Positions 3,118 through 36,990 of a stretch of 64,000 nt of DNA are shown here, in pieces (within the stretch, counting starts at the first letter, position 1; the number at the start of each line of letters is the position of its first letter). The notes under the pieces are model-generated. The model did not search any database and had not been told where the DNA came from. It was given only the letters and a program-made list of their open reading frames with translations. Position numbers and translations under genes: made by a program. This stretch comes from Adineta vaga (lineage: Eukaryota; Animalia; Rotifera): contig CP075493.1 in the NCBI GenBank assembly GCA_021613535.1, forward strand, positions 12,524,001 to 12,588,000, given 5' to 3'.

Positions 3118-6100
3118 TTATTGATTAACATAAATGAAGCGTTGAATTTTCGGTGGGAATTTTCGTCTTTTTGTTCGTTGATTCCATCTTCTTCTTCGTC
3201 TTTGTATTCTTTCTAATTGATCGCTTGCTGGATCAATACCAAAACAGTATTTCAATGTATCCATCACAACAAGAAATAAGCAAACACATCCAACCATAAA
3301 ATAGCATAGATAACCAAATGATTTTGTTGTGATTTCATGTGCAACTAAACTTCGTGAAGCAATTTCACAATGATTACCAGAATAACTTGTACTCAAACAT
3401 TCACATTTATAGTCACCCACTAATGGTCGACATACACCATGGTTGGCACATGTGACATTTTCACAGTGATTTACTTTTCTTTCACAATGATCCCCAGTCC
3501 ATCCTGATTGACATACACATTCAAATGTGGTATTCGATGTTTCATTACAATGACCTAAACAAAGAAAAAACAATATTTTCTTCTTCTACTTCTAGAAATC
3601 ATAGTGTGTATGTCTATGAAAATACGATACCATTATTCCAACATGAATTTGACTGACATGGCCGATGATCATATTCACATGTTGAACCATTGAAACCTTG
3701 TAAACATAAACAAGAATAAGTATTCATGATGGTATTGTTATCGACACAAGTGCCATTATTTTGACAAGGTTTCATCATTTGACAAGGTGTTGCTGAGATG
3801 TTACATGTGAGACCAATTGTATGTTGTCCACAAACTGGTACAGTCATGATTGATGAAGGTGGATGACCTGAGACAATAGAGAAAATATATATTAAAGAGA
3901 GGAGAAAGAGGTATTAGATAGGTGAACCTGTAGTTAATTGATTCGTTGATGATATCATAGTCGAACTATGTTGTGTTGTTATTGTTGTTTCTATAGAGAA
4001 GATAAAAGTGAGATACAATTTGAAGTGACAATGAAGAGAGAGATGGAATACCTGTTTGATAAAGTAGACTGGTTCCTTTTGATGAGAGTGTTGATTGTAC
4101 GAGAAGCGATGTATGCTCGACTACATAGGTTAACTTACGGTATGGTAAAAAGCGATGAGAATTTACCTTTGATGACGGACGTGGAGAATGATTGTTGTGT
4201 TGTAGACTGATCTAAAGAAAAACATTTGACGATTCTCAAACTATTTCGTTTTTCAAAAGCTCTGCTATATTTACCACATAAGCGTGTTGATAACAGAAAT
4301 TTTTGAATACGACTATTATTTTGATCAACAGCATATATATTTCCGCGCGCATCAAAAGCCATACTCCATGGAAATAATAATTCCTTTGAAGCTGAATTAC
4401 TTCCATTACATCCAATAATACATTGTAAAGTGTTTTGTGTCGATCTAACAATGCGATGATTATTACTATCGACTATATACAAATACTTGTTGCCATCTAG
4501 CACAACACTACTCGGACCATTTAATAATGGACTACTTGCTCTCGCTGTGCCATTGGTGTTCCCTGATTGAAAAACTAAAACTCGATCGTTTCCATAATCT
4601 GCAACGTATAAATCAAAGTTGTCATCAACAAAGATTCCAGCAGGATTCGAGAGTCTATCCAATGTCGAATCAGCAGTGCCATTTCCAGCAACAATCGCCG
4701 ATATATCTACACGAGGATCATCTAACCATCGTTTTATGACTTTATGAAGTGAATGGACGGAGCAGTACAGTGAATTACTGATATCAACAAAGAGACCGTA
4801 ACAGGATGAATTAACATACATGACCGGAATGCTAATATTTGTATCTACCTTCCATTGATCGACAGTGCCATTCGCATCACCATTATCAACCAAAATATCA
4901 CCATTAATGGCAACATAAACAGATGCTGGAATAGTGATGTTGTTCAATATTTCTTTTCTTATGTTCATAGAACCGTTCAGCGAAATTTGTATTTTGCTTG
5001 TTTGTCCATGAAAAATATAGATTGAATTATTTTTCGTAATAAACATTGCGACAGGTTTGCTATCAGTCGTAGTTATATTCATAAATGTTGTTGTATTCTC
5101 ATCCCAAGTTGCGAATGAACAAAACCTCAGTTGGTTGTATGATGTCGCTACAAAATAGAAAAACAGAAGTAGACGTGCATCGTTTGAAGATTCTGATAAA
5201 AGAAGCGTTTACCTTTTGTATTATTCAACAGGAGAAACTTTTCAACTAAACTACTATTCCGATCAGTAACATAAATGTTTCCACGAACATCAAAAGCCAT
5301 ACTCCAAGGATATGATAATACACTTGAACCTGAACTAATTTCATAACAACCAATAATGCATCGAAATTCGTTTTGAGTCGATCTGATAACTCGATGATTA
5401 TTACTGTCGACTATATACAAATATTTGTTGCCATCTAACACAACACTACTTGGACCATTTAATAATGGACTACTTGCTCTCGTTGTGCCATTGATGTTCC
5501 CTGATTGAAAAACTAAAACTCGATCGTTTCCATAATCTGCAACGTACAATTCAAAGTTGTCATCAACAAAGATTCCAGCAGGATTCGAGAGTCTGTCCAA
5601 TGTCGAATCAGCAGTGCCATTTCCAGCAACAATTGCCGATATATCTACACGAGGATCATCTAACCATCGTTTTATGACTTTATGAAGCGAATGGACGGAA
5701 CAGTACAGTGAATTACTGATATCAACAAAGAGACCATAACAGGATGAATTAACATACATGACCGGAATGCTAGTATTTGTATGTACCGTCCATTGATCGA
5801 CAGTGCCATTCGCATCACCATTATCAACCAAAATGTCATCGTTTAAAGTAATAAATATAGAGGTTGGATGGATCAGACTATTGTATGTTATGCTCTGTGC
5901 ATGAATAGATTTATTAAACCAGATTTGTAGTAGACTATTGTTACGATCAACGGCATAGACGGAGTCAACTTGATCCAAAAAAATACCATAAAGTTCGCTA
6001 CTGCCTGTATCATTAATTCTGAAACTAACTTGTGTCGGATTCCAAGTAGCTAATGAATTCAAGTTTGGTTCATTATATGAGATATCTAAACAATAACAGT

Positions 6101-8190
6101 GAAAAACTGAATGTGACGTTACAACTGATTCTTTTGAGACTTACTCATTGTATTATTTAACAGGAAAAACTTTTCGACTGAACTACTATTCCGAGCAGTA
6201 ACGTATATATTTCCACGAATATCAAAAGCCATACTCCAAGGATATGATAATACACTTGAACCTGAACTAATTTCATAACAACCAATAATGCATCGAAATT
6301 CGTTTTGAGTCGATCTGATAACTCGATGATTATTACTGTCGACTATATACAAATATTTGTTGCCATCTAACACAACACTACTTGGACCATTTAATAATGG
6401 ACTACTTGCTCTCGTTGTGCCATTGATGTTCCCTGATTGAAAAACTAAAACTCGATCGTTTCCATAATCTGCAACGTACAATTCAAAGTTGTCATCAACA
6501 AAGATTCCAGCAGGATTCGAGAGTCTGTCCAATGTCGAATCAGCAGTGCCATTTCCAGCAACAATTGCCGATATATCTACATCAAGATCATCTAACCATC
6601 GTTTTATGACTTTATGAAGTGAATAGATGGAACAGTACAATGTATTAGTGATATCAACAAAGAGGCCATAACAGGATGAATTAATATACATGACCGGAAT
6701 GCTAATATTTGTATGTACCGTCCATTGATCGACAGTGCCGTTCGCATCACCATTATCAACCAAAATATCACCATTGATGGCGATATAGATGGCTGCTGGG
6801 TTTGTAAAATTCTCGAATACGGTTTTTGTCGCATTAGGGTTTTCTTCAAACCACACTTCAATCTTAGCATTTGCTCGATCAGCAACATAGATCGAACTAT
6901 TTTTAGTTACGAAAATATTGAGAATATTTGTACCAACTGTATTATCCGTCTTGAAAGTGATTCTATTAAAATTCCAAGTAGCTAACTTATCGAAGTTTGG
7001 CTGATTGTGCGAGATGCCTAAATGATTACAGTGAAGAGTTATTTTCGAAGTTGAAAGAATCTTTTAGAATTTACCCATAGTATTATTTAGTAACAAAAAT
7101 TTTCTGATTTGATTTTTATGTCGATCAACAACATATATATTTCCACGAGCATCAAAAGCCATACTCCAAGGACATGATAATACACTTGAACCTGAACTAA
7201 TTTCATAACAACCAATAATGCATCGAAATCCGTTTTGAGTCGATCTAACAATGCGATGATTATTACTGTCGACTATATACAAATATTTGTTGCCATCTAA
7301 CACAACACTACTTGGACCATTTAATAATGGACTACTTGCTCTCGTTGTGCCATTGATGTTCCCTGATTGAAAAACTAACACTCGATCGTTTCCATAATCT
7401 GCAACGTACAATTCAAAGTTGTCATCAACAAAGATTCCAGCAGGATTCGAGAGTCTGTCCGATGTCGAATCAGCAGTACCATTTCCAGCAACTGTTGTCA
7501 ATGTCGTTGTATTAATACTATCTCTTAACGATCGCTTTACGACTTTATGAAGTGAATAGATGGAACAATACAATGTATTAGTGATATCAACAAAGAGACC
7601 GTAACAGGATGAATTAACATACATGACAGGAATGCTAATATTTGTATGTACCATCCATTGATAGACAGTACCATTTGCATCACCATTATCAACGAAAATA
7701 TCGCCATTGTTAGCAACAAATATAGCTGTTGAGTTCGTGAAATTGTGGGCGATGATGTCAATAAAATTCAGATTGTGGTCAGGCCACACTCGAATTCGAT
7801 TATTTCTTCGATCGACGATATAGACAGAATCATTTCTAGTAATAAACATGCTGTAGGATTCTGTAGCAATTGTTTCATTCGTTGGAAAAGTGGCTGGAAT
7901 AGTATCCCAAGTAGATGATACAGTAAAGTTTGGTCGATTAAAAGAAATAACTAAATAAAAGAAATATTTTATTATATTCAAAGAACCAAAGACAGTACTT
8001 TCTGAAGTACTGATCGTTGAAGTAGTTGTTTGTTCTGTTGTCTCTTCCGTAGTGATTGTTGCAACTAAAAAAATGAAAACTATACTAGTACAGCTCAACG
8101 AAAGTTTTTTTTAGATCATTCACTTGAAATGTCTGCTATGCTAAACAAAATCAGCCATACTATGCAGTCATAAATTGACATCATCATCAT
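3118..8190 (-). CDS. Multi-exon type I membrane protein: signal peptide, Thr-rich stalk, four tandem NHL beta-propellers, Ser/Thr linker, EGF repeats, TM, basic cytoplasmic tail
   Basis: ATG at 8190 (MMMMSIYDCIVWLILFSIADIS). The four NHL exons (ORFs 7064-8098, 6119-6856, 5148-6062, 4135-5082) join in frame through phase-1 GT-AG introns. NHL motifs LSNPAGIFVD..LYVADYGNDRV. EGF exons at 3614-3847 and 3118-3573. TM GYLCYFMVGCVCLFLVVM. Confidence 0.8.
4300..7720 (-). repeat. Four tandem ~1-kb near-identical NHL exon copies
   Basis: Long nucleotide-identical stretches between copies, e.g. ~5290-5650 vs ~6220-6580 and ~7140-7490. Confidence 0.9.
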
Positions 8191-10264: not shown

Positions 10265-11336
10265 TCATTTCTCTCCAGGTTTATTTAATGTAGCAGGAAT
10301 AGTCCATTGAGTTATAAAACGTTTTGCTATGTCTCGTTGTCGACGCAATACAGAATAAATTCGATTGTATTGACTAACTGACAAGAGATCTTGAATTTCT
10401 GTAATCCAACTATCAATTTGTTCATTGGTAATAGCTGCAAAATGTTCTAATGTTTTACTGATTAAAGGTCGATCTTCTATCGGTAATTTATTAAGATATT
10501 CTTCAAACTGTTTTGACTTGTGTACTGGATCAAATTTCACGATAGATAGATGATTACTATGAAATTTCGATGCCATAGTACTAATACCACTAACTTTGCC
10601 CATACCAAAACTACTTGCATGATCAATGAAATGTATTTTACCTTTAATTTCATCATCATTTTCATCATTAATGTCAACTGTTTCTGGTATTGTTATTAGA
10701 ATATTATCTTGATTACGATCGACATTTTGTATAATATGATCAAATATATCCATTTCTTCCATAATTGCATTTTTCGATAGTATATCTCGTTTTTTCTTTG
10801 GTAAATCTTTGAATGTAACAGTTTTTTCATTTTCTTCTTCAGCATCAGCATGTAAAGTTGCTAATTTATTCTCATAAATGGCAATTTGTACTTCATTGAC
10901 AGGTAAGGCAAGTTCTTTACCTAAAACATACGCTAACCATTCATTAGCAGCACATAATGGTAATTCTTGAAGTTTAATTAAAATTCGTCGACCTTGAGGA
11001 TCACGTATCCATAGAGATGAACTGCTATAACCTTGATCAGAATTTTCTCCTTCTAATTTCCAATCCGATGTAATTTCCGTGAATGTTGGTTTGATAGAAC
11101 GATTTGTCGTTTGTTGTACCTTTGCTATTTGATTTTGTTTGACTAATCCTTTCTTCACTGCTTCTAAAACATAGTCACTTATATGTGTTCCTTTTGCACA
11201 CAAGTCGACCGTTTTCAATAAACCTTGAACCATGGCTTTGAAAGGACCTCGTAACCAACGAACGATATTATTTGAGAAACGTACTTTGTGATTAATCTGT
11301 AATTCTGCATTGGAATCGAGATATACGACCACTTTG

Positions 11337-11374
<38 letters not shown>

Positions 11375-11947
11375 TTCATCTTCTTGCTTTTGTTCTGAAG
11401 ATATTTTATTCTTTGGCTCAACGGATATATTTTGATCGGCTTTTAAATCTGAATTCGATGAGTTTGATCGCCCAATAACTAACTGAGACAATATGAAAGG
11501 ATCACTTTTATTATTTACAATTAATTTAACAGGATAATTTTCCTCCTTCACTTCATTGTCCAATGACGCATCTGATATTCGGTTTTGATTTTCATTACTT
11601 AACTCTTCTAATTTCATTTGTAAATCTTGAATATCTTGTTTCAATCGTTCAATATCATTTTCCAAATAATCAATTTGCTGAAATGTCGATTGTTTCTCCT
11701 CCTCAATTAGATTTTTGAATTGTTGTTGTAGAATATTTGCTGTTTCTTCAACTTGATTTAATTTCAAACTATACTCATAGATTGGATTGATTAGATCTAA
11801 TAAAGCATCTGTTGTTATTTCTGATGCTAATAATTGCCATTTTTCTTTTATTGAATCTAATGTATACATGATATATTTGAAATGTTTCTTAAGTTTTTCT
11901 TGACGTTCGACATTAGGTTTCGACGCAGTATTATTTGATGAAGTCAT
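10265..11947 (-). CDS. Coiled-coil + acidic linker + HipA-like/PI3-PI4-kinase-like atypical kinase
   Basis: Probable start MTSSNN at 11947, downstream of an intron acceptor. Heptad-rich N-terminus, poly-Asp, kinase motifs ILIK, AANEWLAY, FDHIIQNVDRNQDNILI, FIDHASSFG. Confidence 0.75.
11337..11394. repeat. (TCA)n microsatellite encoding a poly-Asp tract
   Basis: tcatcatca... run; reads EDEDDDDDDDDDDDD in the minus-strand kinase ORF. Confidence 0.95.
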
Positions 11948-13542
11948 TTTTGCAAATAAATCTACAAAAAAAGAATTCAAATGAAGTAAATAATGAAGAG
12001 ACATCGTATGTACGACACGACATGATATTGAATTGTAACATTTTAAACAAGGATGTATTGACCTTCGTATATGATAAGTCTGTCGACATACTGAGCTTCT
12101 TATATTCAAACTACAACTTTGTAAGCAGATAAAACATTAAAATATCCGCATTTTAATAGCTAAATAACAATCTTTTTTGAAAGAAAATGAACTATAAATC
12201 TTTATTTCTTATTCAAACTCACTTTATCATCTTATCTGAAATATATAGATACTACAACGAGTACACCTATAAAAATAAAATATTGTAAAAGTTGTAGTCA
12301 TACGACCTGTTTACCATTATTTTTTGTTACAATACATAACATTGTACGACTCCGTGCTTAATACTTGCAAATATAAAAGTGTTTATTAGTTTTAGTTGAA
12401 GGTGAGAAGACATAGTGAAGGTAAAAATGTGTCGACAAAAGAAAAGGATAAAAGTTATAAGATTGGCTGAAAGAACATCCATCGATATAAATAGCGCTGT
12501 CATAAAGAAATGTAAACTACATAACACAAGATAATAGTGGCATCTTACGATAATATATCGTAATTATGCGCTTTTCTTTCTATCATTGGTTATTATCATT
12601 TATATTTGTCACCTAGTAACCCTTTTCTTTTCCTTTCTGTTACTTTCTCGAACGCTCACCTATACTTATCATCAGTTGAACTGTATCTATAAACAACAAA
12701 TTTGTTTAGGTCCTGAATCGTATGGAAGCAAATAAGTTAATTATTGTTAATAAAAAGAAAGAAAAAAAAAACTTTACGTTCACATTATTATCAAATTATA
12801 ATGATACTGCGATGTAAAAAAAAGAGAAGAGTAATCTTATTAACTACGATTGTTTGCAATCGATTGATAATCACAGTAGAGAAATGTTTTCGACGAAGAT
12901 ATAAAAATAATTTTTTTCCTATAATCATATCTTTCTACTCTGAAACTTTTCACTAAATAATTCATTTCTAAAAATTGTAGTAGAAAAAGTTTTTCAATAC
13001 AACTCAAATCTAGTTAAAGCTTGAATGATGAATTTTTATGTAAAGCATTTATGTACTTCCAACAGAGATACAATTTCTGATCATATTCGTTTCAACATAT
13101 CAATTAATATGAGAAGATCCTTGTTTCATATGTTTGAAGGAATATAATGAATGTTTATTTCTTAATTTCTCTTTACCGTTACTTTGATGTTAAGAAAAAT
13201 ACATTGATTTCTTAGGATTTACTATTTGTTAAATTACTCACGACATGTGCGACAAAAAAGAAAAAGGAGCATTTACAATGGCTCGTATTACAGAATTATA
13301 AAGATAAGAAGGGAAAGAATCAGAAATATGACACTGAAAATATTTTCTTTTCTTCTTCTTATTATATATTGTAGAGAACCAAGCCAAACGACAACATTAG
13401 TAAAGCGTACACCATTAGCAATTCACACTCTTGGCGAAAATAAATTTCAACGAAAGCAGTAAGGCTTCTAAGTTTGATCAATTATACGTTTGAATAATAG
13501 TTCACGTACTGCATTAACTGTTAAGACAATTGCTTTCAGAAA

Positions 13543-15924
13543 ATGGCCGAGAGCAGTAAATCAACAACATATGAAAATACTGATCTTACGGAACGAATTC
13601 AGCCTCGAAATCATTTCTTCGATCGTGAAGAAATTAATCTTGAGTCCCATCAACTTGTCTGGTGTGATGTACAAGCAAAGGCAACATCTGACAAAGAGAC
13701 AATAGAGATGGCCGAAAAACTAAGAAAGATCGTCGATTATACTCAATTCTTCGATGATGTGAAAGAATGTGAGAGATATTTAAAAGATACGACCGATATG
13801 GTTACCTTTCTAATATGTTCTGATGAGTTTGGTAAAACGCTTAACATACATTATCATCAGCGGGAAATATATTCAATCTATGTCTTTTGCCAAAATGATA
13901 AAGAACATAGTCACTGGTCTAAGGAAGAGTCAATGGTAAGTTTTAAATGTTCAGTAACCTATGCATATTTATGTATGGAGAATGAAGACTTTAGACCGCT
14001 TTTTCAATTCTTTGCCGTTCCATAGGTTGGAATGATATATACAAATTATGAAGAATTGTTGAAACATCTAGAAACCGATGTTCAAACCTATCTGGGCAAA
14101 GAAAAACATGGACTTTTCAACGAGTTAGACAGATCCGAGATAACAGCACAGTTGAGCTTAGAGGCACATTGGCCAATAATCGTCGAAAGTTTGTGCTATT
14201 TATCATATCCGGATGATTGCCGTGCAAACTTAGTGGCCTCTCTTCGACACTATTATCAGAACAGAATCCAGACATTAGCCGCTCTTACAGAATTTGAACA
14301 AGAATACACATCGAGTGCAGCTATTCACTGGTATACACGCGACACAGTTCTGTTTCGTCTCCTGAATCGAGCTTTACGTCAGCAAAACACGCAATTATTG
14401 CTTCTCTTCGGTTTTTTCCTTCGAGATCTATTTTTTCAACTGACCGAAGAATATCACAAATTCAAAAGTTTTCATTCTATTACTCCAATAATTACCGTAT
14501 ATCGAGGTCAATTGATATCGTTGAAAGAGTTACGATCATTAAAGGAACCGAATGAAATTGGCGCTCTTGGGTTAATGATCACAAACAGCTTCTTTTCGTC
14601 AACTCTCAATCGGAACTCCGCTCTAATATTTCTTAACCAAACAGCGCGACCAGAAGATGAAGAGCAGAGTGTGCTCTTCGAAATTGAAATTGACTTTCGA
14701 AAAGAGTCATCACATCCTTTTGCGGACATCTCCCAACTGAGTCACTTTTCGAGTGAACAAGAAATTCTCTTCATGCCTGGAACATATTTCGGAGTCAGCA
14801 AAATCACTTACAGTACAGAAGAAGGGATTTATATCATTAAACTAAATCTATCCGCACAAATAAAGTCGAAATTTAACAATTTATGTCAGAGAAGACTCCT
14901 GAAAAAATGTTCCGATCGACTCGCTGATTATCTTTCAGATGAGACGAGTAACGAAATCGATGGCGGTTTCGACGCACTAACCTGTTTATTTCCTTCCGAA
15001 GAACAATGGTTATTGGCCGCTAAATACCAATGTTTAGGTCAAAGTTATCATTGGGATATACATTTACCTGATCTTCAAAAAGCCTTATCACACTATAGCC
15101 AGGCTCTTCAAATCTGGGAAAACTTTCTAACTGACAGAGACTTGAATTGTTCAGTTAACATCGGAGATATTCATGAATCACTTGGTGGGTTGTATCGTGA
15201 ACACTATCAAGATTATTGCCTCGCTAATAAGCACTATGATCTCAGCGTCAATTCCTGCAAAACTGCGCTCACAAATAAAGAACATGACTACGAAGAACGA
15301 AAATATTTGCTCAGAATGATAAGCCGAGTTTATGAGCAAAAAATGGAGATTTCTGGCGACGATGTCGAGCAGCGAAGACAGAATTGTTTGAAAGCGATCA
15401 AAGTGGGGCGGCTAGAATTTCAGGAAATGGTCAGAAACTCAGATTCATGCATGGTTACTGAAGCTGCAAGTTGTATTCATAGAGTAGGGACTCTCGAGGA
15501 ATCCATATGTATGCATGACGAAGCGTTAATTAGTTACAATGAGGCATTGCAAATCTATGATAGACAGTACCATACACCTCTCAGGGACACAATAGCAATT
15601 TATGATCGCATGGCAAAGATCTATCTCGAGCATAAGAAAGATGAAGATTTAGGACTCAAGTATGCATTAATGAAACATGAGAACGTATTGCAAACTCAGA
15701 AAGTAGACGCCAATGCCGGTGCAATGCTAACTGCTTTTGTAAAATCGATACTGGCTGAGAGTTATTTAGAACTGGCTGATGTTTATATTAAGCTATATCA
15801 AACTGAACAAGCTTGGACTAACCTAAGAATGGCAAAGCAACTTTATGCAGAAAGCAATTATCCATATATTGAAGAAGCAATCAAAAGGATCGAAGAAAAA
15901 CTAACGGCGATAGGAACAGTCTAA
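13543..15924 (+). CDS. ART (R-S-E mono-ADP-ribosyltransferase) + TPR protein with an N-terminal alpha/beta domain; 2 exons
   Basis: Intron 13936-14025 (GTAAG..TAG) joins the two ORFs in frame. WYTRD, VYRGQ, FFSST, EQEILF motifs; C-terminal TPR-like helices (ALSHYSQAL, ALISYNEAL). Confidence 0.85.
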
Positions 15925-16519
15925 CATTAGATTAACTCTTCAATAAATTTCATTTTTTACGACAATAATTCCTGAACTTTCAGATTTTATTTCAAAAGAG
16001 AATGTGGATTTAAGTGAGTTGGAATCTGGACGGTAGAATGTAGAGACATATGTAATACCAAGCCGTATCAATGCACATCCGTCTGAAGATCCTACATCTT
16101 TATAATGAAAAATCTCAACGATATTGTAAGAAATTACTATCGAAAAGGTGATAATTCTATATCTTTGGAAGTGAATTAAAGTACTATGAGAATCTTGTGT
16201 TGTTGTTTTTTCGCTCTATCAAACTCAGAAAGAACTGTTATCAGTCTGAGTGTTTGTCGGTTCTATTATTCATCATGAAAACACTTTTTCGTTGTCAATT
16301 ACGTCTTCAAAATCTTTCGTTTAGCCTGTTTATTGAAATAACGTTTGCATCTTACTAATAGCTACCTATACAAATAATATCAATGGACATGAATAAGAGT
16401 ATGCGAGAAGTTATATCAGAAAAGGAGTCTTATATATGTCACATATTAGCAATATGTGACAGCATTGCATCTGAACACATTCTGTGATGTTTATTTAGAA
16501 AGAAAAGAGTTAATTCCTA

Positions 16520-17423
16520 TCTACGAAAATGCATTGAACTGCTCGACACTACCAATAAGAACTCCATGAACACAAGCATTTTTCATTCAGGTTTTCATTC
16601 CAAATTCAGATGCAGACATAGAAGAGCCATCATATTGACTAAGAAATCCAATTAGATGAATTGAACCACCGAATACGAGTGCTTCAAATGATTGTTTTAA
16701 TGTTTTTTCACCGCCAACTTCAAGAATATGATTAACGCCTCTTCCATCAGTTAATTCTTTAGAATTTTTATCCGGTTCAGGAACTTCTGAATAATTAATT
16801 GTTAAAACATTCTTTTCACTAAGATGCTTTTTGATATTAGCAATTTTCTCATTTGATGATGAAATAATAATAACTTTGGTACCAGCTGCTAAGGCTAATT
16901 GTGCACCAAAGACACTGACATCACCAGTACCTTGAACACGAACAGTTTCACCGGTTTTTAAAAGCTTTATCAGAAATTACATACAGAGCATTCCGAGCTG
17001 GCAAAGCAGCACAAGGTAATGTTGCCACTTCTTCGTAAGAAAGCGAAGTTGGAATTTTTCACACAACTCAGGGCACGAAAGATACCATATTGACGAAGAC
17101 AACCGTCTAGTGCAGCTCCAAGACCAGAATGAAGTGCTTCTTCGGTAAGTTGTCCTCCAGTATGATCTCGACTAAAACTCGGTGAAACACCATCACCCAC
17201 AGCTGTAATTTCGTCTGCTCCATCAGATACTGATATGATGCCTTCTTTTATTGGTAATGGATATTAATCCTTTGCTAATGAGTAAATCTCGATAATTAAG
17301 TGAGCAAACATGAAATTTAATTTGAATTCTATTCGCACCTGTTTGAGGAGTTGACGACGATTTATGTAATTTAACTGAGTCAAATCCTGTGCCATTCGAT
17401 AATTTGTATTCTTGATTGGACAT
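16520..17423 (-). pseudogene. Zinc-binding/NADPH medium-chain dehydrogenase-reductase (MDR) pseudogene, microbial type
   Basis: SLNYRDLLISKG; GETVRVQGTGDVSVFGAQLALAAG; GRGVNHILEVGG. Broken by frameshifts and in-frame stops. Confidence 0.75.
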
Positions 17424-18402
17424 TTTTTCACTAGCAACAAATGACAAAAATTATGATTTTCCTTTACGTACGACACTCAATATTCGTTTTAGTAAACTAC
17501 ATGCATACTGTATGTCAATAATAGGTAAATATTCTTTTTCTCATACATGTAGTGCGTACCACGAGGTGACAAGAATAGTAATCCGTATATCTCAAGTACG
17601 TTACAGCTAAATTTAGAAATATAATTTCAAGGACAATTGTGAATATATGTATGTTTGTTTCATTAAGTATTTACATCTGCATCTACCCTGGTGAAAAACG
17701 GAACACATTGATAGTAAATAGATGAGAGTTGATTAGATTCAGATTTTGGAATTTTTTTCGTAAGAGCGAGATGGAGTTGGGATAAAATATGTTTCAGAAT
17801 ACTTTATTTTCCATCACTGAATGTCAAGAACCAATGTTTTATGAACATTGCTCACAGTGTATTGTTCGTATTTTTTAAAATTCAACGGAGAATCGTGATA
17901 TCGATTGCGAACTAACATAACAAGACGTGGTTGTGTAATTACACAGAAATGCTGTTGTATCACAATTCATTTCTGGTTTTACACATATAATTTCTTTCTT
18001 ATAACACGCGATACGACGTAATAGTATGACTCATGTGCTTTTTCCATGCGTATAAGAATGGAAGAGAACGATCGGATAAAACTAATTGTTTTATAATAAC
18101 GACTATATATAACATACAAAACGCTACAGACGGTGAGTATCAAGCGAAAAGAAAAGCGTGAGGATATAGTTTTCAACTTTTGCTGTTCTTTAATTCTGCT
18201 GTATTTCTTTCATAGCAGAGATTGAATAGTTTGAGGGTACTAGAAAAAGAGATAAATATTGCAGAAAGAATAAAGTGATTCATTTGAAATTATCAAAAAA
18301 CTAAAAATCAAATATTGTTTTAGCTTTTGTTCGTTGTTGAACAATTCGATTTCAATCTTTATTCTTTATTTAGAAAGTTCGAAAAACTATATTATTATTA
18401 AA

Positions 18403-18618
18403 ATGGGTGAAGTACAAGGCAAATCAGACGCTGTGCAACGTGATCAAGCAGCTCAGATTCGTCAATATGACGATAACAGTGGTAAGAAAGCACTCAGTTC
18501 TCAAGAGCGGAATACGGTTAATGCCGTTATACACAGTCCGGACCTGAAACATTCACCAAAATTCGACAAACCATTAAGCAATTTGGCTAAGAAGCATCCC
18601 GGTGCATTTCCAAAGTGA
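18403..18618 (+). CDS. Small hydrophilic protein (71 aa), unknown function
   Basis: AAAATGG start after an intron-acceptor-like TTTAG; coding-like composition within AT-rich flanks. Confidence 0.55.
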   Translation: MGEVQGKSDAVQRDQAAQIRQYDDNSGKKALSSQERNTVNAVIHSPDLKHSPKFDKPLSNLAKKHPGAFPK

Positions 18619-19044
18619 AAAAAAATTCAATCAATCAAACTAACCTGAGAAGGACAAATGGATATATTGAAAACTAATCTTCTATGAATAATACTGAATA
18701 GCTTGTCATTTTATTTTTGTTTTCTAAACAAAGTAAAATATATAAATAAGTGTATATTTCATTGAATTATTGATTTCATATTGAGATTGTATACATACAT
18801 AGTCAATCATATAATCGTGGAACTTTGTAATAATATCTTATCTTATCAGTTCAAAGACTTTATATTTCAGTTAGAACTACCAATAGAATTATATATACTT
18901 TATGATATTTTCAAAACAAAAAGCATATTTACTTCTTTATTTTCTCTATATGAATAACTATAAGCATTTAGAGATACGAATGTTCTCAATCGTTTATGAA
19001 AATAGGATCGTTTCAAATAGAAATAAAATACAATTGTGTCATTC

Positions 19045-21171
19045 TTAAGTCGACTTCCATTGTTGTCCTTCATATGCTATCCATTTACTCAAAGTTTTGA
19101 CAAATTTCCGAGCATATAAATGAGTCAGCCAATGTTCAGGTAGATTCTCATAACCATAGTAAGCACCTGCTAATTGTCCATAGATAGCTGCTGTTGATCC
19201 TGTTTCATCACCGAGATTAACAACAGCAAGTGCACCTCTTTCAAAAGAATTATCATCACACCAAAAAGCCCATAAAGCTGCTTCTAAAGCATTGACAATG
19301 TAGCCTTTACCTCGAATTCCACCTTCATATCCACCTTTACGTTGATATGATCCTCTTGAGACTTTTAATATCTCCGACGACAGTGGATATTTATAAAACC
19401 AACTTTTGTGTTTCAAATAAAAATCTTTATCAAGTAATTGTTCCTTAGTTTCACTGTGAAGAGCTGCAACGATAAGTGCACTATAGTAACGACATGCATC
19501 ATAAGCAATTCGATCACCATGCGTAATCTCACCACTAATTCCTGCGAATTCTATTGCTTCAATAGGATATTTCCAGAAAAAGAGTGGTACAGGAGCTAAA
19601 CGCACTAGAGCTCCATTATCAGCTGCAGTTTCATCACTACAAAACGTATCAAATTTCTCCAGAAGATTTAAATCTGAAAGATAATCTAATCGTTCGAGAG
19701 GTATATTATTTTTATCAGCAAATTGTTTCTGACGACGTTCAAATTCACGCAAAGATTGACTGGTCGCTGCATCAATATCATAACACTTTCCAGTCACTGC
19801 CATATAACCATTTCTGTACCACCATTTGTAACGAACTAATTGATCATAAGGAATAAAATCACGACGTCCTACCAATGAATTTGCCAGACAAAGTGCCATG
19901 GAAGTTTGACTAGTAAACTAAGTAGAATATACTATTATTTATCCATGACCTGAGAACATGAGAGAACTATGTACCTGTCCTTTTTCCAGATTCCATGTTC
20001 CTCCTGCTTGTAGATCAGTAACTGGATGTTCAAGTAAATATTCTCGTGTTCGATATTCAGCCGGAGTACCAAGAGCATCACCCAATGCTAATCCAATCAT
20101 TGAACCTTGAATACGTGTCAAAATTTTATCATCAATATCATCAGAAGGATCCTGTATTTCACATTCCAATTGATTACGTATCTTGTTCGATCGATGATCA
20201 ATAAATTGATTTTGATGATCAAGCCATACTTTGTCTAAAACAAATATATGATGCTTGTTTTCCAGAAATAAACCGAGACTAACCTGAATGAAATTGACAC
20301 ATGGGATGGCTTTGCTGTGATTCATTAACCACTGAAATAAATGATAGATATTCGATATGAACATTGCTATTTAACAAGTCATACCTAATCGACTTGATCG
20401 ATTTCGCAATAATTGTGATTGAATTTTCTGATCAATAGCTTGCACTTCTACTTCGACAATATCATCTGATACAGTATCATTCGGTGGAGCCATTAGTCGA
20501 TGTGGAGGAATTTCTTCTTCCAAATGAATCATATGTAATCCATCTGCAGGACTCCATTTACTCCTTACACGAAGATATGTACCAGGCATAAGGAGAATTT
20601 CATTTTCATTCTCATAAACCGAATGTTGACGAATATTTTTACCATTTAAACATTCGACCATAAAGATCGTTCGTACACCTGTTCGACCAATAAATTGTTC
20701 GAGTACATCCATTGTTTCCGTACACGAACTAAAACCCCACCAGATATAATCTTTTTTATAGTGTTCACTTACGTCGCCATGTACACCGCGCCAAACTGTT
20801 CTTTTTACCGATGGTAATTTGTATAAGGCAGTTAGAAAAAGCTTTAGATAGGAAAACCATGGCGTAAGTTGTTCACGAAGTTCTGCACGAAGTGTTCGAT
20901 TGAGCTGTACATAGAGACTTTCATATGGTTGAGACCATTGTAAAGTATAAAGACGAATAGCAGCTGATTCGTCAATTGTGAGAGTGTCTGTTGGAGTGAT
21001 TAAATCTCGTTTTGCTAACCATACGATTCTATCAAGATCATGTACCAATTCTTTTATTCTTGGAATAGCTTCTTCAAGTGATACTAATGGTTTCTTTTCA
21101 TAACCTTCGATTGGCATACGAGGACGAGTTGGTTCTTTGTCAGCATCGATAAAACGATCGATAATACTCAT
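19045..21171 (-). CDS. ART + ADP-ribosylglycohydrolase (ARH/DraG-like) fusion, 4 exons, ~655 aa
   Basis: Exons 21171-20385, 20331-20284, 20234-19975 and 19917-19045 splice in frame at canonical GT-AG sites. ART: AIRLYT, VWRG, FSSCT, ENEILL. ARH: GLALGDALG, NGALVRLAP, ITHGD, ALEAALWAF, TAAIYGQLAGAYYG. Confidence 0.9.
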
Positions 21172-21441
21172 TTCTTTTTTTGTAACTGATTTGTTTCGTT
21201 ACTATAGAAGTATGACAATGATAAGAAAAATAACAACTCTTACAATGTTGTATCACGTTTATGTGTCATGGTTCCTATGATTACATGCGTTTCTCGATGA
21301 AAGATAAGGAAGAAATAAAAGAAAATCTCGCATAAAAATATTTTCTTTTATTCGAAAGATTATATCTTAAAGAAGTAATACACAATACAAAGCATACAAC
21401 CGAATCATATTTGTCTTTTACATATATTCGTTGTTCGTTTT

Positions 21442-23497
21442 TCAAGGTGATTCGTTGATATAAACGAATCGTTGAATTGAGGGTGAATATTTTCGTCGTT
21501 TTACTCGCTGATTCCTTCTCCTGATTCTTTGTATTCTTTCTAATTGATCACTTGCTGAATCAATACCAAAACAGTATTTCAGTGTGTCCATCACAACAAA
21601 AAATAAGCAAACACATCCAACCATAAAATAGCATAGATAACCAAATGATTTTGTTGTGATTTCATGTGCAACTAAACTTCGTGAAGCAATTTCACAATGA
21701 TCACCAATCCATTCTGATTGACATACACATTCAAATGTGGTATTCGATGTTTCATTACAATGACCTAAACAAAGAAAAAACAATATTTTCTTCTTCTACT
21801 TCTAGAAATCATAGTGTGTGTGTGTGTCTATGAAAATACGATACCATTATTCCAACATGAATTTGACTGACATGGCCGATGATCATATTCACATGTTGAA
21901 CCATTGAAACCTTGTAAACATAAACAAGAATAAGTATTCATGATGGTATTGTTATCGACACAAGTGCCATTATTTTGACAAGGTTTCATCATTTGACAAG
22001 GTGTTGCTGAGATGTTACATGTGAGACCAATTGTATGTTGTCCACAAACTGGTACAGTCATGATTGATGAAGGTGGATGACCTGAGACAATAGAGAAAAT
22101 ATATATTAAAGAGAGGAGAAAGAGGTATTAGATAGGTGAACCTGTAGTTAATTGATTCGTTGATGATATCATAGTTGAACTATGCTGTGTTGTTTCTATA
22201 GAGAAGATAAAAGTGAGACACAATTTGAAGTGACAATGAAGAGAGAGATGGAATACCTGTTTGATAAAGTAGACTGGTTCCTTTTGATGATAGTGTTGAT
22301 TGTACGAGAAGCGATGTATGCTCGACTACATAGGTTAACTTACGGTATGGTAAAAAGCGATGAGAATTTACCTTTGATGACTGACGTGGAGAATGATTGT
22401 TGTGTTGCAGATTGATCTAAAGAAAAACATTTGACGATTTTCAAACTACTTCGTTTCTCAAAAGCTCTCTTATATTTACCACATAAGCGTGTTGATAACA
22501 GAAATTTTTGAATACGAAGGTTATCTGTATCTGTAACATATATATTCTCGATATTATCAAAAGCCATTCGCCGTGAATTCGATAGTTGATTAGATGCTGA
22601 ACTGCTTCCATTACATCCAATGATACAGTGAAAACCATTTTGACTTGATCGAACAATTCGATTATTATTGCTATCAACAATAAACAAATGACTATCAGCA
22701 TCTAGTACGATTGACCTCGGACCATCGAGTGTGATGGTAAAATTTACTGAATATTGTCCTGCTATAGTTATTCCATTTGATTGTTCTGGATGAAACAATT
22801 GGATGCGATCGTTCCCACAATCAGCTACGTATAAATCAAATTTAATGTCAACAAAAATTCCACAGGGAGCATTAAGACGAGTGGAGGAAGAGCCTGAATT
22901 AACATTTCCAGCGACAGTTGTGAATGATGCTCCGCCATTGCGCAACCATCTTTTCACGACTCTATGGGAATTAGAGACCGAACAGTATAGAGTATCATTA
23001 GTATCAACAAAGAGACCCAAACATGACGAAGCAACATTCATAGAAAGAAGGAAACTGACACTTGGATCTAAGGTCACTTTATCAACTTCGCCATTCGTTT
23101 TAGCAGTATCGACATAAATATCGCTGTTGTTCATTATAAAAATAGAATATGGATTCTGCAAGTTACTATGTGTGATAATTCTTGGAGAAGTATCAATATT
23201 AAACCAAATAAGAATTTGATTTTTGCTTTGATCAACGACGTAGACTGAATTGTTTGTGCTGACAAAATACCAAAAGGTTTATCAACTATCGAGCTGTTAC
23301 TAAAAGTAATTCCAACCGGATTCCAAGTAGAACACTATCACTAAATGTTGGTTGATTGTATGGAACAGCTAAACAAGACGTATATTTTTATATTAATACG
23401 ACTAATCATATACTTTAAAAAAGAATAAAAATCTACCTAAGATTTGCTCACTGATGGACAAAATGAACCATAAACGAATATTATTCTTGATTAACAT
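21442..23497 (-). pseudogene. Single-NHL + EGF + TM paralog of the 3118-8190 gene, probably frameshifted
   Basis: Signal exon from ATG 23497; NHL ORF 22340-23161; linker/EGF/TM exons and introns nearly identical to ~3200-4315. Two apparent frameshifts near 23265 and 23335. Confidence 0.7.
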
Positions 23498-27402: not shown

Positions 27403-29133
27403 ATGAGTTTTGAATCTTTGGCAAATGAATTATTACTTGATTTATTTGAATATTTTCCTGTTGTTGATCTTCTCCGAGCATTTCATCGTCTCAATACTCG
27501 AATAGATAATCTGATTATTTCACATTTTCAAACTCATACTCTTGATTTTCAAAATATATCCAAGCAAGATTTCGATATTATTTGTCAAGTAAATCTTTCA
27601 GTGATTATCAAACATGTTGTTTCACTACGTTTATCAGATGACAATGAAACACCTCAACAGATTGAATTATTCCGTTCGTATCAATGGGATTTTAATCAAT
27701 TTGAATCTCTTCGTTATCTCACATTAAATCAAATCCGTTCATTGCCAATGACAACTGAAATATTATCCAGATGTCTTCAACTAATTCATCTTAACTTAAC
27801 TGCACTTTATTCCCAACATCAAGATGATGATTTTCTTCGTTTTATGAATAACATTTGGAATTTACCTAAATTGACTCGTTGTTATTTAAATGTTAAATTA
27901 ACTCATGAATCGAATATTCCAACACCAACTGTTTATTCTATGTCAATTGAACATTTATCCCTTATTGATGTATCATATCATACTGGTCAATTGCTTCATC
28001 TCTATGAACATACACCAAATCTTCGATATCTTGAAATAAGTTTGTATCATATGAATTATGTAGAAAAATTACGAAGAACAATTCCATCCGTTACTACTCT
28101 CTATCTAGTTTCTCTCAATCCACAAGATGGAATTTTAAAAAGTGTATTACAATATATGCCCAATCTGTATAGATTGAAAGTTGAAATTGTTTATTTGCCT
28201 GTGAATGGATATCAATGGGAACAAATCATCGAAAGTTATCTACCAAAATTAAAAATATTTCAGTTGAAGATGACTTTTCAAATGATAGATATTCGTTTCA
28301 AGGAAGATTTATTCACTTCGTTTCAAACATCATTTTGGCTCGAAAAACATCAATGGTTTATTCGATATCATGATAATTCTAATCAAATCTGTTTGTATAC
28401 ATTGCCTTATAGTTTTTCTGATCTTACTATTTATTCTCCTTTTCATACTAAATACACATGTCCCAATGACATATTTTATCAGTCGTACAATTGTGTTCAA
28501 CGTTTACTATCTTTATCATGTTCTTTACGAGCAATAATGCATCTTTCTTATCTTCAATTTCCCAATATTATTACTTTAACAATCAAGTTTCCATACAATG
28601 AGTATTTAATACCAGTCGTCAAAGAATTTCGACGATTACATTCATTAGAGATCTCACGGCGACATAATACATTAGATGCCGATGTTCAATCACAATTGCA
28701 ATTATTACTTGATCATACAACTGATCTTTATTCATTAAAGTTCGATAGTTGGTCAGAAATAAAACAATCAACAACATCAGAAAAATTAACACCAATGATT
28801 ATCAAAAGTCAATCCATTCGTCAACTAAATCTTCTTGGTTTTTGTCATTGTTTTACTCATGAAGAGTGCCTTGACTTTAGTCGTTCATCAATTGCTATTC
28901 ATTGTGAAGTACTTTGCATTAGAGTGGAACAAAGAAAAAGTATACTTTATCTTATCAATACAATGGACACATTACGAGCTTTGGTTGTCAGATCTGTAGA
29001 TGATAGTTGGACATGTTTTCAAAAAGATGAAAATGAATTGGATCGATGGTTAAAACAAAATCTATCATCCGAATGTTCAATTCAACGAGATTCTCGTTCA
29101 ATGCGTCTTATTCGAATATGGATTCATCGTTAA
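27403..29133 (+). CDS. F-box-like/LRR protein
   Basis: N-terminal FESLANELLLDLFEY; LRR-like repeats; QWEQIIESYLPKLKIF, LYTLPYSF; C-terminal IRIWI. Confidence 0.85.
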   Translation: MSFESLANELLLDLFEYFPVVDLLRAFHRLNTRIDNLIISHFQTHTLDFQNISKQDFDIICQVNLSVIIKHVVSLRLSDDNETPQQIELFRSYQWDFNQFESLRYLTLNQIRSLPMTTEILSRCLQLIHLNLTALYSQHQDDDFLRFMNNIWNLPKLTRCYLNVKLTHESNIPTPTVYSMSIEHLSLIDVSYHTGQLLHLYEHTPNLRYLEISLYHMNYVEKLRRTIPSVTTLYLVSLNPQDGILKSVLQYMPNLYRLKVEIVYLPVNGYQWEQIIESYLPKLKIFQLKMTFQMIDIRFKEDLFTSFQTSFWLEKHQWFIRYHDNSNQICLYTLPYSFSDLTIYSPFHTKYTCPNDIFYQSYNCVQRLLSLSCSLRAIMHLSYLQFPNIITLTIKFPYNEYLIPVVKEFRRLHSLEISRRHNTLDADVQSQLQLLLDHTTDLYSLKFDSWSEIKQSTTSEKLTPMIIKSQSIRQLNLLGFCHCFTHEECLDFSRSSIAIHCEVLCIRVEQRKSILYLINTMDTLRALVVRSVDDSWTCFQKDENELDRWLKQNLSSECSIQRDSRSMRLIRIWIHR

Positions 29134-32237: not shown

Positions 32238-35200
32238 TTAACACGTTTTAGAAATAATATCAATATTGCCTGTTCCATAGTTGGTTACTAAAATATCTAA
32301 CCATTTGTCATTATTGATGTCTTCAAGTGCAACATATACAGGTCGAGCATCATATCCCATCAAAACTTCTGTTTGATTAACAAATGTTCCATCTCCAATA
32401 CCAAATAGAAGAATAATAGAATTTGAACCATAATTAGCAGTAATTATATCTAATTGTTGATCATTATTAATATCACCAGTAACAATGAAATAAGGAACAA
32501 ATCGAGGATCAATTAAATATGTTATGATTGATCCAAATGATCCATTTCCAATATTTAATAGTATACCAATATTACCAGTACCGTAATGTGCAACGGCAAT
32601 ATCCGTTTGATTGTCTTGATTAAAGTCGCCAACTGCAACGGAATATGGCATGGATCTATTACCAGTTGAAAAAGTTGTCTGATTTGAAAAAAATCCATAA
32701 CCTAGTCCGAAAAATATACCAATATTATTATAACCAGAATTGCCAACTACAATATCTGTTAAACCATCATTATTAAAATCAGCGACATTCACAGAATGTG
32801 GTAAGGAACCAATTCCAGTAGATAATGGCATTACATCGAGAAATGCTTTAGTAGATGTGCCAAGAAAAGTATAAACTCGAAAGTTATCAAATATAGTTAT
32901 ATCTAATTGACCATCATTATTGAAATCAGCGGCGTGAACAAAACTTGGATCAAAAAACAAACTATGATAAATCCTTGTTGGACTAGAAAAGTCGCCATTA
33001 CCATATCCCAACCACAAAGCAACAAAATTGTTATATCGATTTGTTATTGCAAAATCGAGTCGAGTATCGAGATTAAAATCACCAACAGTAATAGATAAAT
33101 AATCAGTTGAACTACCACCATGTGTTAATTTTGGACTTCGAAATGTTCCATTTCCGTATCCTAGATAGATGCCAAAATAACCTGTCGAATAATAACCAAC
33201 GACAATATCCATATTATTATCTTTATCAAAATCACCAACGGCTACAAAGCTTGGATTAATTCCTTGAGAAACGTAATATGTTGTTTGATTTGTGAATGTT
33301 CCATTACCGTAGCCTAAGAAGATGCCAATAGTATTTCCATAATAATTTGCAACAACAATATCCGTTTGATTATCATTATTAAAGTCACTAACAGCAAGAC
33401 AGATAGGCTCAGATCCACTATTCGTTGAATATGTTATTTGATTTGCAAATGTTCCATTACCATAACCTAAAAAGATTCCAATATTATTTCCATAAGAATT
33501 TGCAACAGCAATGTCCGATTGATTGTCATTATTAAAGTCGCCAATGGCGACAAATGCTGGATAAGAAGCACTATTCGTTGAATAAGTCATTTGTTTGTCA
33601 AAAGATCTATTTCCATAGCCGAGAAATATTCCAATAGTATATCCATAAGAATTAGCAACAACAATATCAAGATAATTATCATTGTTAAAATCAGCGATAG
33701 CAACTGCAGTAGGATATGAATTACTTCCTGTCGAACATATAACTGGATCACTAAATGATCCATTACCATATCCAAAAAATACTTGAACATTTTGTCCATA
33801 ATAATTAGCAACAATAATATCTGTTAAATTATCAAGATTCATATCACCAGTAGCTATATTTTTATAAGTATTTGTACCTGTTCGAGGATAATTAAATATC
33901 GATGTGAATGATAGAAGATTAAATCCAAGAAGAACACCTATATTATCAGTACCATAATTAGCAACAACTAAATCCGATCGATTATCATTATTAAAGTCAC
34001 CAACAGCTAAAGATTGTGGTTTAGAACCGGAACCAGTTGAAAAAAATCTTTGATTTGTAAAACTACCATTTTCATATCCAAGAAATATTCCAATACCACT
34101 AGTACCAACATTAACTGTAGCAAGATCAAGTATTTCATCATTATTAAAATCATTGGAAAGAATCATGATTGGTTGAGATTGAAAATCAGTAAAATAAGTT
34201 TTGTCTATAGTAAAAATTCCGCTACCATTTCCAAAAAATACACCGAAATTATTCGATCCATAATTCGATACTCCTATATCGGATTGATTATCATCGTTGA
34301 AATCGCCGACAGTTAAAGATGATGGAAGCGATCCATATGATGTTGAAAATTCAGTAATACGATTAAATTTACCTGAATCATATCCTATAAACATTCCAAT
34401 AGTATTGGTATCTGGATTAGCAACAATAATATCTAATCGTCCATCACGATTAAAGTCATCGGCAGCAACAAAATAGGGACCTCCTGCACCTGTTGAATAT
34501 AAAGGTCCGTCAATGAACGAACTACTGCCTGTTCCCAATAAGATAAATAGACCTTTACTTCCATAATTAGCAATAGCTATATCTAAATTATTATCATTAT
34601 CAAAATCAGCGACAAAGACACACATTGGATAAGAGCTTTGACCAACCCATTTAACGTTTCGATCTTGAAAGGTACCATCACCATTACCAAGCAGTAATCC
34701 TGTTGTACTTCTTTCATTATTCGCAGTGATTATATCTAATCGAGAATCTTTATTATAATCACCAACAGCCACAAATGTTGGATATGAAATTTCTCCTGTA
34801 GAAATTTTTGTTTGTTCCGTAAATGTACCATTACCATATCCAAGATATACACTGATATCATCAGAATAATAATTAGCAACAACAATATCTAATTTCATAT
34901 CATTATTAAAATCACCAATAGCTAAAGAAATTGGATTACTTCCAGTAGAATATGTTTTCGAACTTTTAAATGAACCATTATCATAATTTAAAAATATCAC
35001 TATGGTATATGAATAGGAATTACAAACAACAATATCCAACAGAGTATCATTATTAAAATCACCAACAATTGCAACATAAGGATACGATCGTGAACCCGTT
35101 GAATAAGTTATCTGATCAGCAAATGATCCATTGCCGTATCCAAAAAAAATGCCAATATTATGTTTACCATAATTAGTAACAACAATATCTAAGTTTCTAT

Positions 35201-36990
35201 CGTTATTTAAGTCACCAATAGCAATATAATTTGGATAAGATCCACTTCCAGTAGAAATTGTAATCTGATCAGTAAATGATCCATTTTCTTGACCGAGAAA
35301 TATACCAATATTGTTTGCATAATAATTACCAACAACTGTGTCTGGTTGACCATCATTATTTAAATCACCAATAGCCAAAGTATATGGCCCATTGTCCGTT
35401 ATATAAGAGACTTGTTCTCGAAAATCTGCTGTTCGAACACCTAAGAAAATACCAACATTATTCGTAGCATTATTTGCTACAACAATATCCATTCGACTAT
35501 CATTATTAAAATCACCAATTGTCACAAATTGCACACCAGTATTAACACCAGTTGTATAAGTTACTTGATCAGTAAATGATCCATTACCTAATCCAAAAAA
35601 TAAGCCAATATTATCTGTACCAGTATTAGCAACTGCAATGTCTTGTAAATGATCATTATTAAAATCAGCAACAATCAAAGAATGTGGATTCGAATTTGTA
35701 CCCGTTGAAAAAGTCATTTGATTGAAAAACGTTTCATTATTATTGGCAAGAAAGATGCCAATATTATTCATTGCAGAATTAGCAACAACAATATCAAGAT
35801 GATTATCACCATTAAAATCACTGATAGTGATAGAATATGGTCGAGATCCGAAACCAGTGGAATATATGTTAAGATTTGTAAAACTTCCATCGCCAATACC
35901 ATAGAATATACCAATATTGTTTGTACCGAAATTTGCAATAGCAATATCTAGATATCCATCCTTATTTAAATCAGCAACTGTCAATGATTTTGGTTCCGAA
36001 TCATAACCTGTTGAATATTTTAATAAAGATTGAAATGTTCCATCACCATTTCCAAGGAAAATACCAATGTCATTCGTACCATGGTTAACGACAGCTAGAT
36101 CAATTTTAGAGTCATTATTAAAATCTCCATTTGTAATTGCTATTGGTCGAGAAGAATCAGTTGAAAATATAATTGGAGATGCAAAACTTCCATCACCCTC
36201 ACCAAGTAATATACCCACACTATTAATTCCATAGTTTGCTACAGCAATATCCAAATAAGTATCGTTATTAAAATCGGCAATGGTTACGGCATAAGGAAGA
36301 GAACGTTTAGTTGTAGAATATGTTATTTGATTTTCAAATGTTCCATCACCTTTACCTAAGAGAATTCCAATATTATCTGCACCATAATTAACAACAGCAA
36401 GATCTAAATAACGATCATCATTAAAATCACCAACGGCAATTGCTCGACTACGAGAATTATACTGCATATCAGTTTTTGTTTTACGTTCAAATTTTAATAC
36501 ACAGGTTTTAACTAAATTATATCCGTTATTTCATTCTTTTTTATGAATAAAAACTAAATTGAACATACTTGGTGGTTGTGGTATGGTATAATAAACAACA
36601 ATGATACCAACAATCATGGCTATCGATGTAAATATACATGATAGAAAAACACGATTAGTCACAAATAGTAAAACTAACCAATAAAGAGATTTTCTATGAA
36701 ATAAAAACAATGATGATTAGGTACGATAAGAGAAATCCTACTGTAATACTTTTTCTCCGGAGTTGTAACATGGTTTATTTCGATATCAGCGTCATTTCGT
36801 GCTTTGTATTCATCTTCAATCGAACCAATAACTTGATTTGCCTTAGTAGAACTAATATTCTCCGAAAATGGATTATTGATTGCTTTCGCAATAGGATTCA
36901 GAATAATTATTTCGTCCTATAAAAAAATTCTCACATCAGTATTACCTATAGATTTATATGAATTCATACGTTTTCCAAATCAGATGACAT
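32238..36990 (-). CDS. Large FG-GAP/VCBS-repeat beta-propeller protein with an N-terminal membrane anchor
   Basis: 1409-aa exon with over 25 GDFNNDxxxDIxVxN repeats. Upstream small exons (MSSDLEN from 36990; TM VFLSCIFTSIAMIVGIIVVYY near 36590-36680) appear to splice in frame; the 5' structure is less certain. Confidence 0.85.

Follow-up and report, generated by a model that had tools for sequence, protein, structure and literature searches.

The window analysed here (64,000 nt of contig CP075493.1 of Adineta vaga) carries a minus-strand gene of four exons, in which an ADP-ribosyltransferase (ART) of the R-S-E class is fused to a complete ADP-ribosylhydrolase (ARH) fold whose four metal-binding aspartates are all replaced. 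The same replacements, together with further new residues in the active cleft, are fixed in orthologues from Adineta ricciae and Adineta steineri, and the combination of ART and pseudo-ARH is a real, conserved, genus-level variant. The ARH half is in all likelihood non-catalytic and functional; tentatively, we consider it a partner- or substrate-binding module which aims or gates the ART.

Gene structure and orthologues

Sequence and profile searches were run exon by exon, and continuity of the frame between exons was checked by arithmetic. The four exons, translated separately, sum to 1968 nt, i.e. 655 amino acids plus stop (Table 1). As the initial annotation had claimed, they join in frame through a 48-bp micro-exon, and the remaining frame was likewise found intact, with no internal stop in 655 codons. 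The introns are GT-AG, with phases 1, 1 and 0. Position 19917 is the sole in-frame acceptor for exon 4, and the position of intron 3 is common to most A. vaga ARH paralogues.

Table 1 Features of the ART/pseudo-ARH gene; positions refer to the 64-kb window, residues of the ARH half are numbered after DraG
Feature	Position	Strand	Description
Upstream non-coding stretch	21172..21290	-	Short blocks conserved in 3 species; probably 5' UTR or core promoter
Exon 1	20385..21171	-	787 nt; ART domain (~residues 1-230) and start of disordered linker
ART R128	20790-20788	-	Catalytic arginine
ART serine	20727-20725	-	Serine of STS-like motif, reads FSSCT
ART Y186	20616-20614	-	ARTT loop
ART E189, E191	20607-20599	-	E-x-E
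Intron 1	20332..20384	-	53 nt, GT-AG, phase 1; donor position identical in both orthologues
Exon 2	20284..20331	-	48-nt micro-exon, end of linker
Intron 2	20235..20283	-	49 nt, GT-AG, phase 1
Exon 3	19975..20234	-	260 nt; ~40-residue N-terminal extension and first part of ARH fold
Glu-flap glutamate	20058-20056	-	E28 equivalent, kept in a remodelled loop
Intron 3	19918..19974	-	57 nt, GT-AG, phase 0; contains in-frame stop
Exon 4	19045..19917	-	873 nt; main body of pseudo-ARH fold and stop codon
Metal motif 1	19903..19914	-	TSQT for TDDT; D60 to S, D61 to Q
D97 and G99	19771..19779	-	D97 equivalent kept, invariant G99 to aspartate (alignment)
ExxA motif, G125 and N126	19612..19632	-	Adenine-contact motif kept, invariant G125 to aspartate, N126 kept (alignment)
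Metal motif 2	19195..19212	-	GDETGS for GDDTDT; D243 to E, D245 to G, T246 to S

The A. ricciae orthologue (CAF1264646.1, 655 aa) is 85–87% identical exon by exon, and that of A. steineri (CAF1496231.1) 81–84%. Intron positions and the micro-exon with its splice signals are common to the three species; the micro-exon peptide is 86–93% identical in A. ricciae. For A. steineri, the longer model seems to have retained intron 2, which is 45 nt long and free of stops. Over ~25 kb, A. vaga and A. ricciae are collinear in gene order, except for an A. vaga-only stretch downstream. No orthologue outside Adineta was found in the sampled genomes and length windows, where the next matches were 68% identical, and a metagenome scan yielded none. 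Copy number varies between assemblies (L059:10001-16556; L062:7320-13726; A. ricciae contig of L061): one A. steineri assembly holds a tandem pair, another a single copy and a further one partial flanking copies, and a second copy is probable in A. ricciae.

The ART half

Exon 1 matches the Pfam ART family PF01129 (E 1e-9, above cut-off). The arginine R128, the serine of the STS-like motif and the catalytic glutamate E191 follow in this order on the ART fold, so that the domain appears to be the intact R-S-E ART that had been annotated. Its Y-x-x-E-x-E segment agrees with the ARTT-loop consensus X-X-aromatic-X-X-E/Q-X-E (PMC8120803). A structural model of the domain matches HopU1 and Vis; a PDB sequence search with exon 1 returned no match. 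An R-S-E signature with E-x-E points to arginine acceptors. No hydrophobic stretch was detected in exons 1, 3 and 4, so that no signal peptide or membrane span is apparent in these exons, in contrast to vertebrate-type ecto-ARTs, which have a signal peptide and a GPI anchor. To the ARTs of the A. ricciae and A. steineri orthologues, the identity is ~90%.

Metal motifs and cleft of the ARH half

Exons 3 and 4 match the Pfam ARH family PF03747 at profile positions 1–47 and 49–287, which together make up its full length. Both acidic metal motifs are altered as first described, and TSQT and GDETGS are found in both orthologues and in every allele or copy that covers the motifs; one detail of the initial annotation had to be corrected, as it placed TSQT across the exon 3/4 junction, but the motif lies wholly in exon 4, one codon past the junction. 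Upon alignment with Rhodospirillum DraG, all four metal-binding aspartates proved to be replaced, the residues of the two-metal centre (D60, D61, D243, D245 and T246) reading S, Q, E, G and S in 3/3 species. Chance is an insufficient explanation, since 21 of the 23 other full-length A. vaga paralogues read TDD and DDTDT (of the remaining two, one has DDADT with the aspartates kept and the other, L008, lacks both motif-2 aspartates), and sequencing error is contradicted by the two orthologues, which have the same residues. Some codons of the altered motifs differ synonymously between species. Invariance of D60/D61 among the bacterial matches is a product of the search pattern and was not counted as evidence.

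Apart from the metal ligands, GDALG is kept in exon 3, and so are the adenine-side residues corresponding to E121, A124, H158 and Y212; the N126 equivalent is serine in A. ricciae. The two glycines G99 and G125, now aspartates, are invariant in 80/80 bacterial and in 241–242 of 243 bdelloid ARHs, and going by the DraG complex they presumably face the pyrophosphate. Altogether, A. vaga, A. ricciae and A. steineri share 16 identical changes at columns which are at least 85% invariant in 127–243 other bdelloid ARHs; most of these changes sit on active-site loops.

An ARH without its two-metal centre cannot hydrolyse ADP-ribose linkages. PMC7050489 describes this centre as needed in all characterised ARHs for both catalysis and substrate positioning, and assigns adenine-contact roles in DraG to the ExxA motif and Y212; in ARH3, every single aspartate mutant is impaired (PMC8141533). 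With all four aspartates gone, the A. vaga ARH is therefore very probably not a canonical eraser, which agrees with the earlier suggestion that it may be non-catalytic.

Selection on both halves

Both halves are under strong purifying selection. Among Adineta orthologues, dN/dS by three methods was 0.05–0.13 for exon 4, 0.05–0.14 for the ARH part of exon 3 and 0.02–0.10 for the ART core; dS of exon 4 was 0.7–1.2 by two methods and near saturation by the third. The initial annotation had named a dN/dS near 1 on the ARH half as the mark of simple decay, and values this far below 1 refute it. Under neutrality, the 12 derived codons of exon 4 would be retained across a single pair distance (0.7) with P ~1e-7, and the five metal-site codons alone, across the same distance, with P ~1e-3. 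Between species, the altered ARH is 84–87% identical, compared with 74–83% for catalytically intact paralogues. In an ARH tree built by a quick method, the orthologous group has a stem of 0.30 and crown branches of 0.08–0.11, which suggests a burst of change followed by stasis. As in ARH2/ADPRHL1, the loss of metal aspartates is thus conserved under purifying selection. Among the folded parts, the N-terminal extension is the least constrained (dN 0.13–0.19 vs 0.03–0.08).

Fold and comparison with known systems

Structures were predicted from the A. ricciae orthologue in the database. The model of the ARH domain reached a pLDDT of 93, and its best structural match was Tri1 (Z 45.1, rmsd 1.7 over 302 residues); together with the PF03747 match over two exons, the prediction bears out the full-length ARH fold originally proposed. 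The full-length model (pTM 0.52, disordered linker) gave no support for a fixed ART-ARH interface. Family models, scored on exon 4 alone, which lowers the score, stayed far below their cut-offs, with 150 vs 490 for NF041672 (Tri1) and 62 vs 337 for TIGR02662 (DraG).

Tre1/Tri1 of Serratia proteamaculans (also Listeria Lmo0067), a toxin and the immunity protein that protects against it, resembles the A. vaga protein in pairing an R-S-E ART with an ARH of the same subfamily, and Tri1, too, has an N-terminal extension before its ARH fold. The bacterial pair, however, consists of two genes with an active ARH, and Tre1 is a separate secreted toxin, whereas A. vaga has one spliced animal gene without metal site and without secretion signal. 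With DraG of the DraT/DraG nitrogenase switch, the A. vaga ARH has in common the DraG-type fold, the E28 Glu flap, D97 and the ExxA and tyrosine (Y212) adenine contacts; it differs in the replaced D60, D61, D243, D245 and T246, in the fusion to an ART and in having no nitrogenase context. Vertebrate ARH2 (ADPRHL1) is likewise a conserved ARH that lost metal aspartates, and its old active site is the conserved part (PMC7390403, PMC4990356). In both proteins, the first aspartate of motif 2 has become glutamate and the second a small residue, and each has gained a cleft aspartate, not necessarily at the same position. ARH2 nevertheless is of independent origin (ARH1 lineage, E 1e-6 to the family profile), stands alone and loses the adenine-binding residues which the A. 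vaga pseudo-ARH keeps; the closest relatives of the latter are bdelloid and bacterial DraG-type ARHs, with ARH1 matching weakly, which argues against descent from the ARH1 lineage. Trypanosome mt-SAF23 and Chlamydomonas ARHL are examples of an ARH fold serving as a subunit of a large protein complex, but with 15–21% identity and no ART partner.

ART-ARH fusions in bdelloids

The A. vaga genome (100.8 Mb in six contigs) was surveyed for paralogues and contains ~24 full-length ARHs of the Tri1/DraG type, of which nearly all have the canonical motifs; ART matches number at least 148. Intact paralogues are 55–68% identical to the altered ARH, and three other ARHs (L003, L008 and L010) have an ART directly upstream. 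Since annotated ART-ARH fusions also exist in A. steineri, A. ricciae and a number of Rotaria species, and the ESM Atlas holds a 170-member rotifer cluster of them, the architecture is ordinary for bdelloids; the A. vaga gene stands out by its eraser, which is both remodelled and frozen. The other fusions, in the ESM Atlas cluster as well as L003, L008 and L010, have the same domain order, linker and intron before metal motif 1. In most of them, the ARH is intact and the ART evolves fast, its catalytic triad often being incomplete; the TSQT orthologous group is their mirror, since here the ART is frozen and the ARH remodelled. For two sister fusions in which the eraser is intact, the ART shows 44–51% identity to that of the putative orthologue, orthology being taken from the ARH tree, so that domain swaps could widen the identity gap. 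Of 18 rows, each a fusion gene or tight clade, all four with damaged ARH have a complete R-S-ExE ART, compared with 3/14 in which the ARH is intact (Fisher P 0.011). As the rows are non-independent, Q-x-E and N-x-E were scored as incomplete and genes with both halves dead would be lost anyway, this association of damaged ARH with complete ART across fusions is offered as a lead only.

Fusion L008 (L031:2513-4830; ~13.370-13.372 Mb of C3) has a complete ART triad and a damaged eraser with GDITTT as motif 2; its ARH is sister to an intact paralogue, which makes the loss an independent one, and no orthologue was found among the proteins fetched. A well-supported Rotaria fusion clade (P0247, P0249, P0256, P0265, P0269 and P0272) has glutamine in place of the ART arginine in all members and ARH aspartates mostly kept, and is possibly a conserved pseudo-ART plus eraser, a mirror of the A. 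vaga case. Other fusion partners of bdelloid ARHs are SAM, AIG1-like GTPase, caspase-like and EF-hand domains (L033:2579-4786, L043:3605-7456; P0184, P0197, P0241), which suggests a use in signalling or immunity. Beyond rotifers, the ARH type is 41–50% identical to many bacterial proteins, and sponge and Acanthamoeba proteins of the same type exist, which leaves the transfer undated; a similar ART within 3 kb was found at 0/80 bacterial ARH loci.

Interpretation and alternatives

As the rebuilt metal site has stayed the same in three species, a new function without catalysis is probable for the disabled half. The product would be one cytosolic protein, in which a flexible linker connects a mono-ART of the arginine type to an ARH fold; the latter would have turned pseudoenzyme before the three Adineta species diverged, and it has been fixed since. 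Its metal-free cleft would be lined by five carboxylates (E28 and D97 kept, D243 changed to E, and Asp at G99 and G125); it would no longer hold ADP-ribose in the usual way and may bind a basic protein segment, e.g. an arginine-bearing substrate or partner. The pseudo-ARH could in this manner aim or gate the ART, and tags written by the ART would not be removed in cis. Fusion to repeat or binding domains, e.g. LRR, NHL, MORN and FG-GAP, is habitual among rotifer ARTs, and these domains probably act on them in a similar way. Two points weigh against the preferred reading: the adenine-side residues that are kept would fit nucleotide binding equally well, and the public A. vaga annotation skips the ART. 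We infer a ranking in which partner or substrate binding precedes ADP-ribose reading, followed by autoinhibition. More generally, and as a possible but doubtful extension, bdelloid ART-ARH fusions may have split repeatedly into one-sided forms, the Adineta eraser cleft having become a new kind of site through which an intracellular arginine ART is controlled, either by recognition, with targets bound in the absence of metal, or by catalysis, with new chemistry at a shifted metal site.

Of the earlier interpretation, the single gene, the intact-looking ART, the presumably non-catalytic ARH and the absence of decay are supported, but its option of an ADP-ribose reader is weakened. A dead ARH might bind ADP-ribose or ADP-ribosylated arginine and thus recruit the writer or shield its marks from the ~22 intact erasers. 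In favour of this, the adenine contacts and the equivalents of H158, E28 and D97 are kept, single-site mutants of ARH3 still bind ADP-ribose, with D77A 23-fold tighter than wild type (PMC8141533), and weak binding could suffice inside one polypeptide. Both metal sites are altered, however, and the same source reports that the same D-to-E change (ARH3 D314E) removes the second magnesium, that human ARH3 without the second magnesium loses ADP-ribose binding 44- to 60-fold, and that metal-free ARH3 binds ADP-ribose at 81 μM vs 1.4 μM. In a model of ADPRHL1, moreover, an aspartate in the cleft clashes with the ADP phosphates (PMC4990356), and these data together speak against normal ADP-ribose binding. 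Plain ADP-ribose reading is also disfavoured by the change of two near-invariant glycines to aspartates in loops that presumably hold the pyrophosphate, and we regard the reader as unlikely.

Still less probable is a built-in immunity, in which the ARH blocks its own ART until a signal releases it, resembling the steric half of Tri1 immunity. [quoted passage not shown] Yet this extension is the least constrained folded part, it also occurs in paralogues without ART, the conserved changes lie in the old active cleft, where steric blocking does not need them, and the predicted full-length structure with its disordered linker lends no support to a fixed interface.

It is improbable, and more so than the two preceding options, that a shifted metal site made up of the five carboxylates has acquired a new reaction or acceptor specificity, by which the protein would still be a writer-eraser or a writer with another kind of hydrolase. 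D97, crucial in DraG (PMC7050489), and E28 are kept, the new acidic residues adjoin D97/E28 and are frozen, and an alternative metal site has been proposed for the new aspartate of ADPRHL1 (PMC4990356). The four aspartates, on the other hand, are needed in all characterised ARHs, each single ARH3 mutant being impaired (PMC8141533), and ADPRHL1, with similar losses, is without measured activity.

A wrong gene model, with ART and ARH as separate transcripts or with the ARH spliced to upstream EGF exons, is very improbable. The public NCBI model I4U23_004094 (UJR17199.1; window 19048-22949, minus strand) does splice upstream EGF exons into the middle of exon 4, so that these precede the last 198 residues of the ARH and the ART is skipped, and one A. 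ricciae model also fuses an EGF gene to a second copy. This is opposed by the three introns, all short and GT-AG, whose phases match and whose positions are shared by 3 species, by the conserved 48-nt micro-exon, by one-protein annotations in A. ricciae and A. steineri, which favour the single gene assumed initially, and by the EGF/NHL neighbour, which is a separate gene in A. ricciae. Given this cross-species evidence, UJR17199.1 is likely a mis-annotation, and expression tables built on it would consequently misreport the ART-ARH gene; among the rows listed in expression tables of published supplements, none was found for this locus. Simple decay of a redundant eraser, one copy being dispensable beside ~24 full-length paralogues, is ruled out for practical purposes by dN/dS no higher than 0.14 at a dS near 0.7–1.2, by the lack of stops or frameshifts and by identical derived residues in three species.

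Novelty and significance

A search of mostly open literature retrieved no description of rotifer ART-ARH fusions, nor of an active-type ART fused to a conserved pseudo-ARH. Already known are pseudo-ARHs (ADPRHL1, PMC7390403) and ART/ARH pairs, and rotifer fusions exist in databases under automatic names. The A. vaga gene provides a pseudo-ARH case independent of ARH2, with partly parallel changes and fused to its likely client enzyme. Vertebrate ARH2 is the one well-studied pseudo-ARH and is needed for heart chamber growth; we know of no ligand for it. With close intact paralogues as natural controls, the gene allows the role of a dead ARH cleft to be tested directly. The case also suggests that, when a writer-eraser pair of microbial type has been fused in an animal genome, one half alone tends to stay active; should the rebuilt cleft be a new site, the gene would encode an ARH fold that has acquired a new ligand and is connected in cis to a writer.

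Neighbourhood in the window

Two further ART genes are present in the window, an ART-TPR gene at 14032-15924 (+) and an ankyrin-ART gene at 39296-41140 (-). The former lies in the stretch at ~12500-19000 which is present in A. vaga and missing between the collinear genes of A. ricciae; it also holds a dehydrogenase-like fragment near 17000-17480 and, at 18403-18618, a 71-codon ORF without family match. Single-exon ORFs at 10265-12109 (-; 614 aa) and 27403-29133 (+; 576 aa) have no Pfam match, and the first of them has a conserved counterpart at the collinear position of A. ricciae (74% DNA identity). A 1409-aa single-exon ORF at 32238-36467 (-) comprises ~25 FG-GAP repeats. Tandem NHL-repeat segments are located at 4290-7744, and an NHL/EGF block is duplicated at 3088-4899 and 21420-23122 (83–87% identical), both in the same arrangement as in A. 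ricciae.
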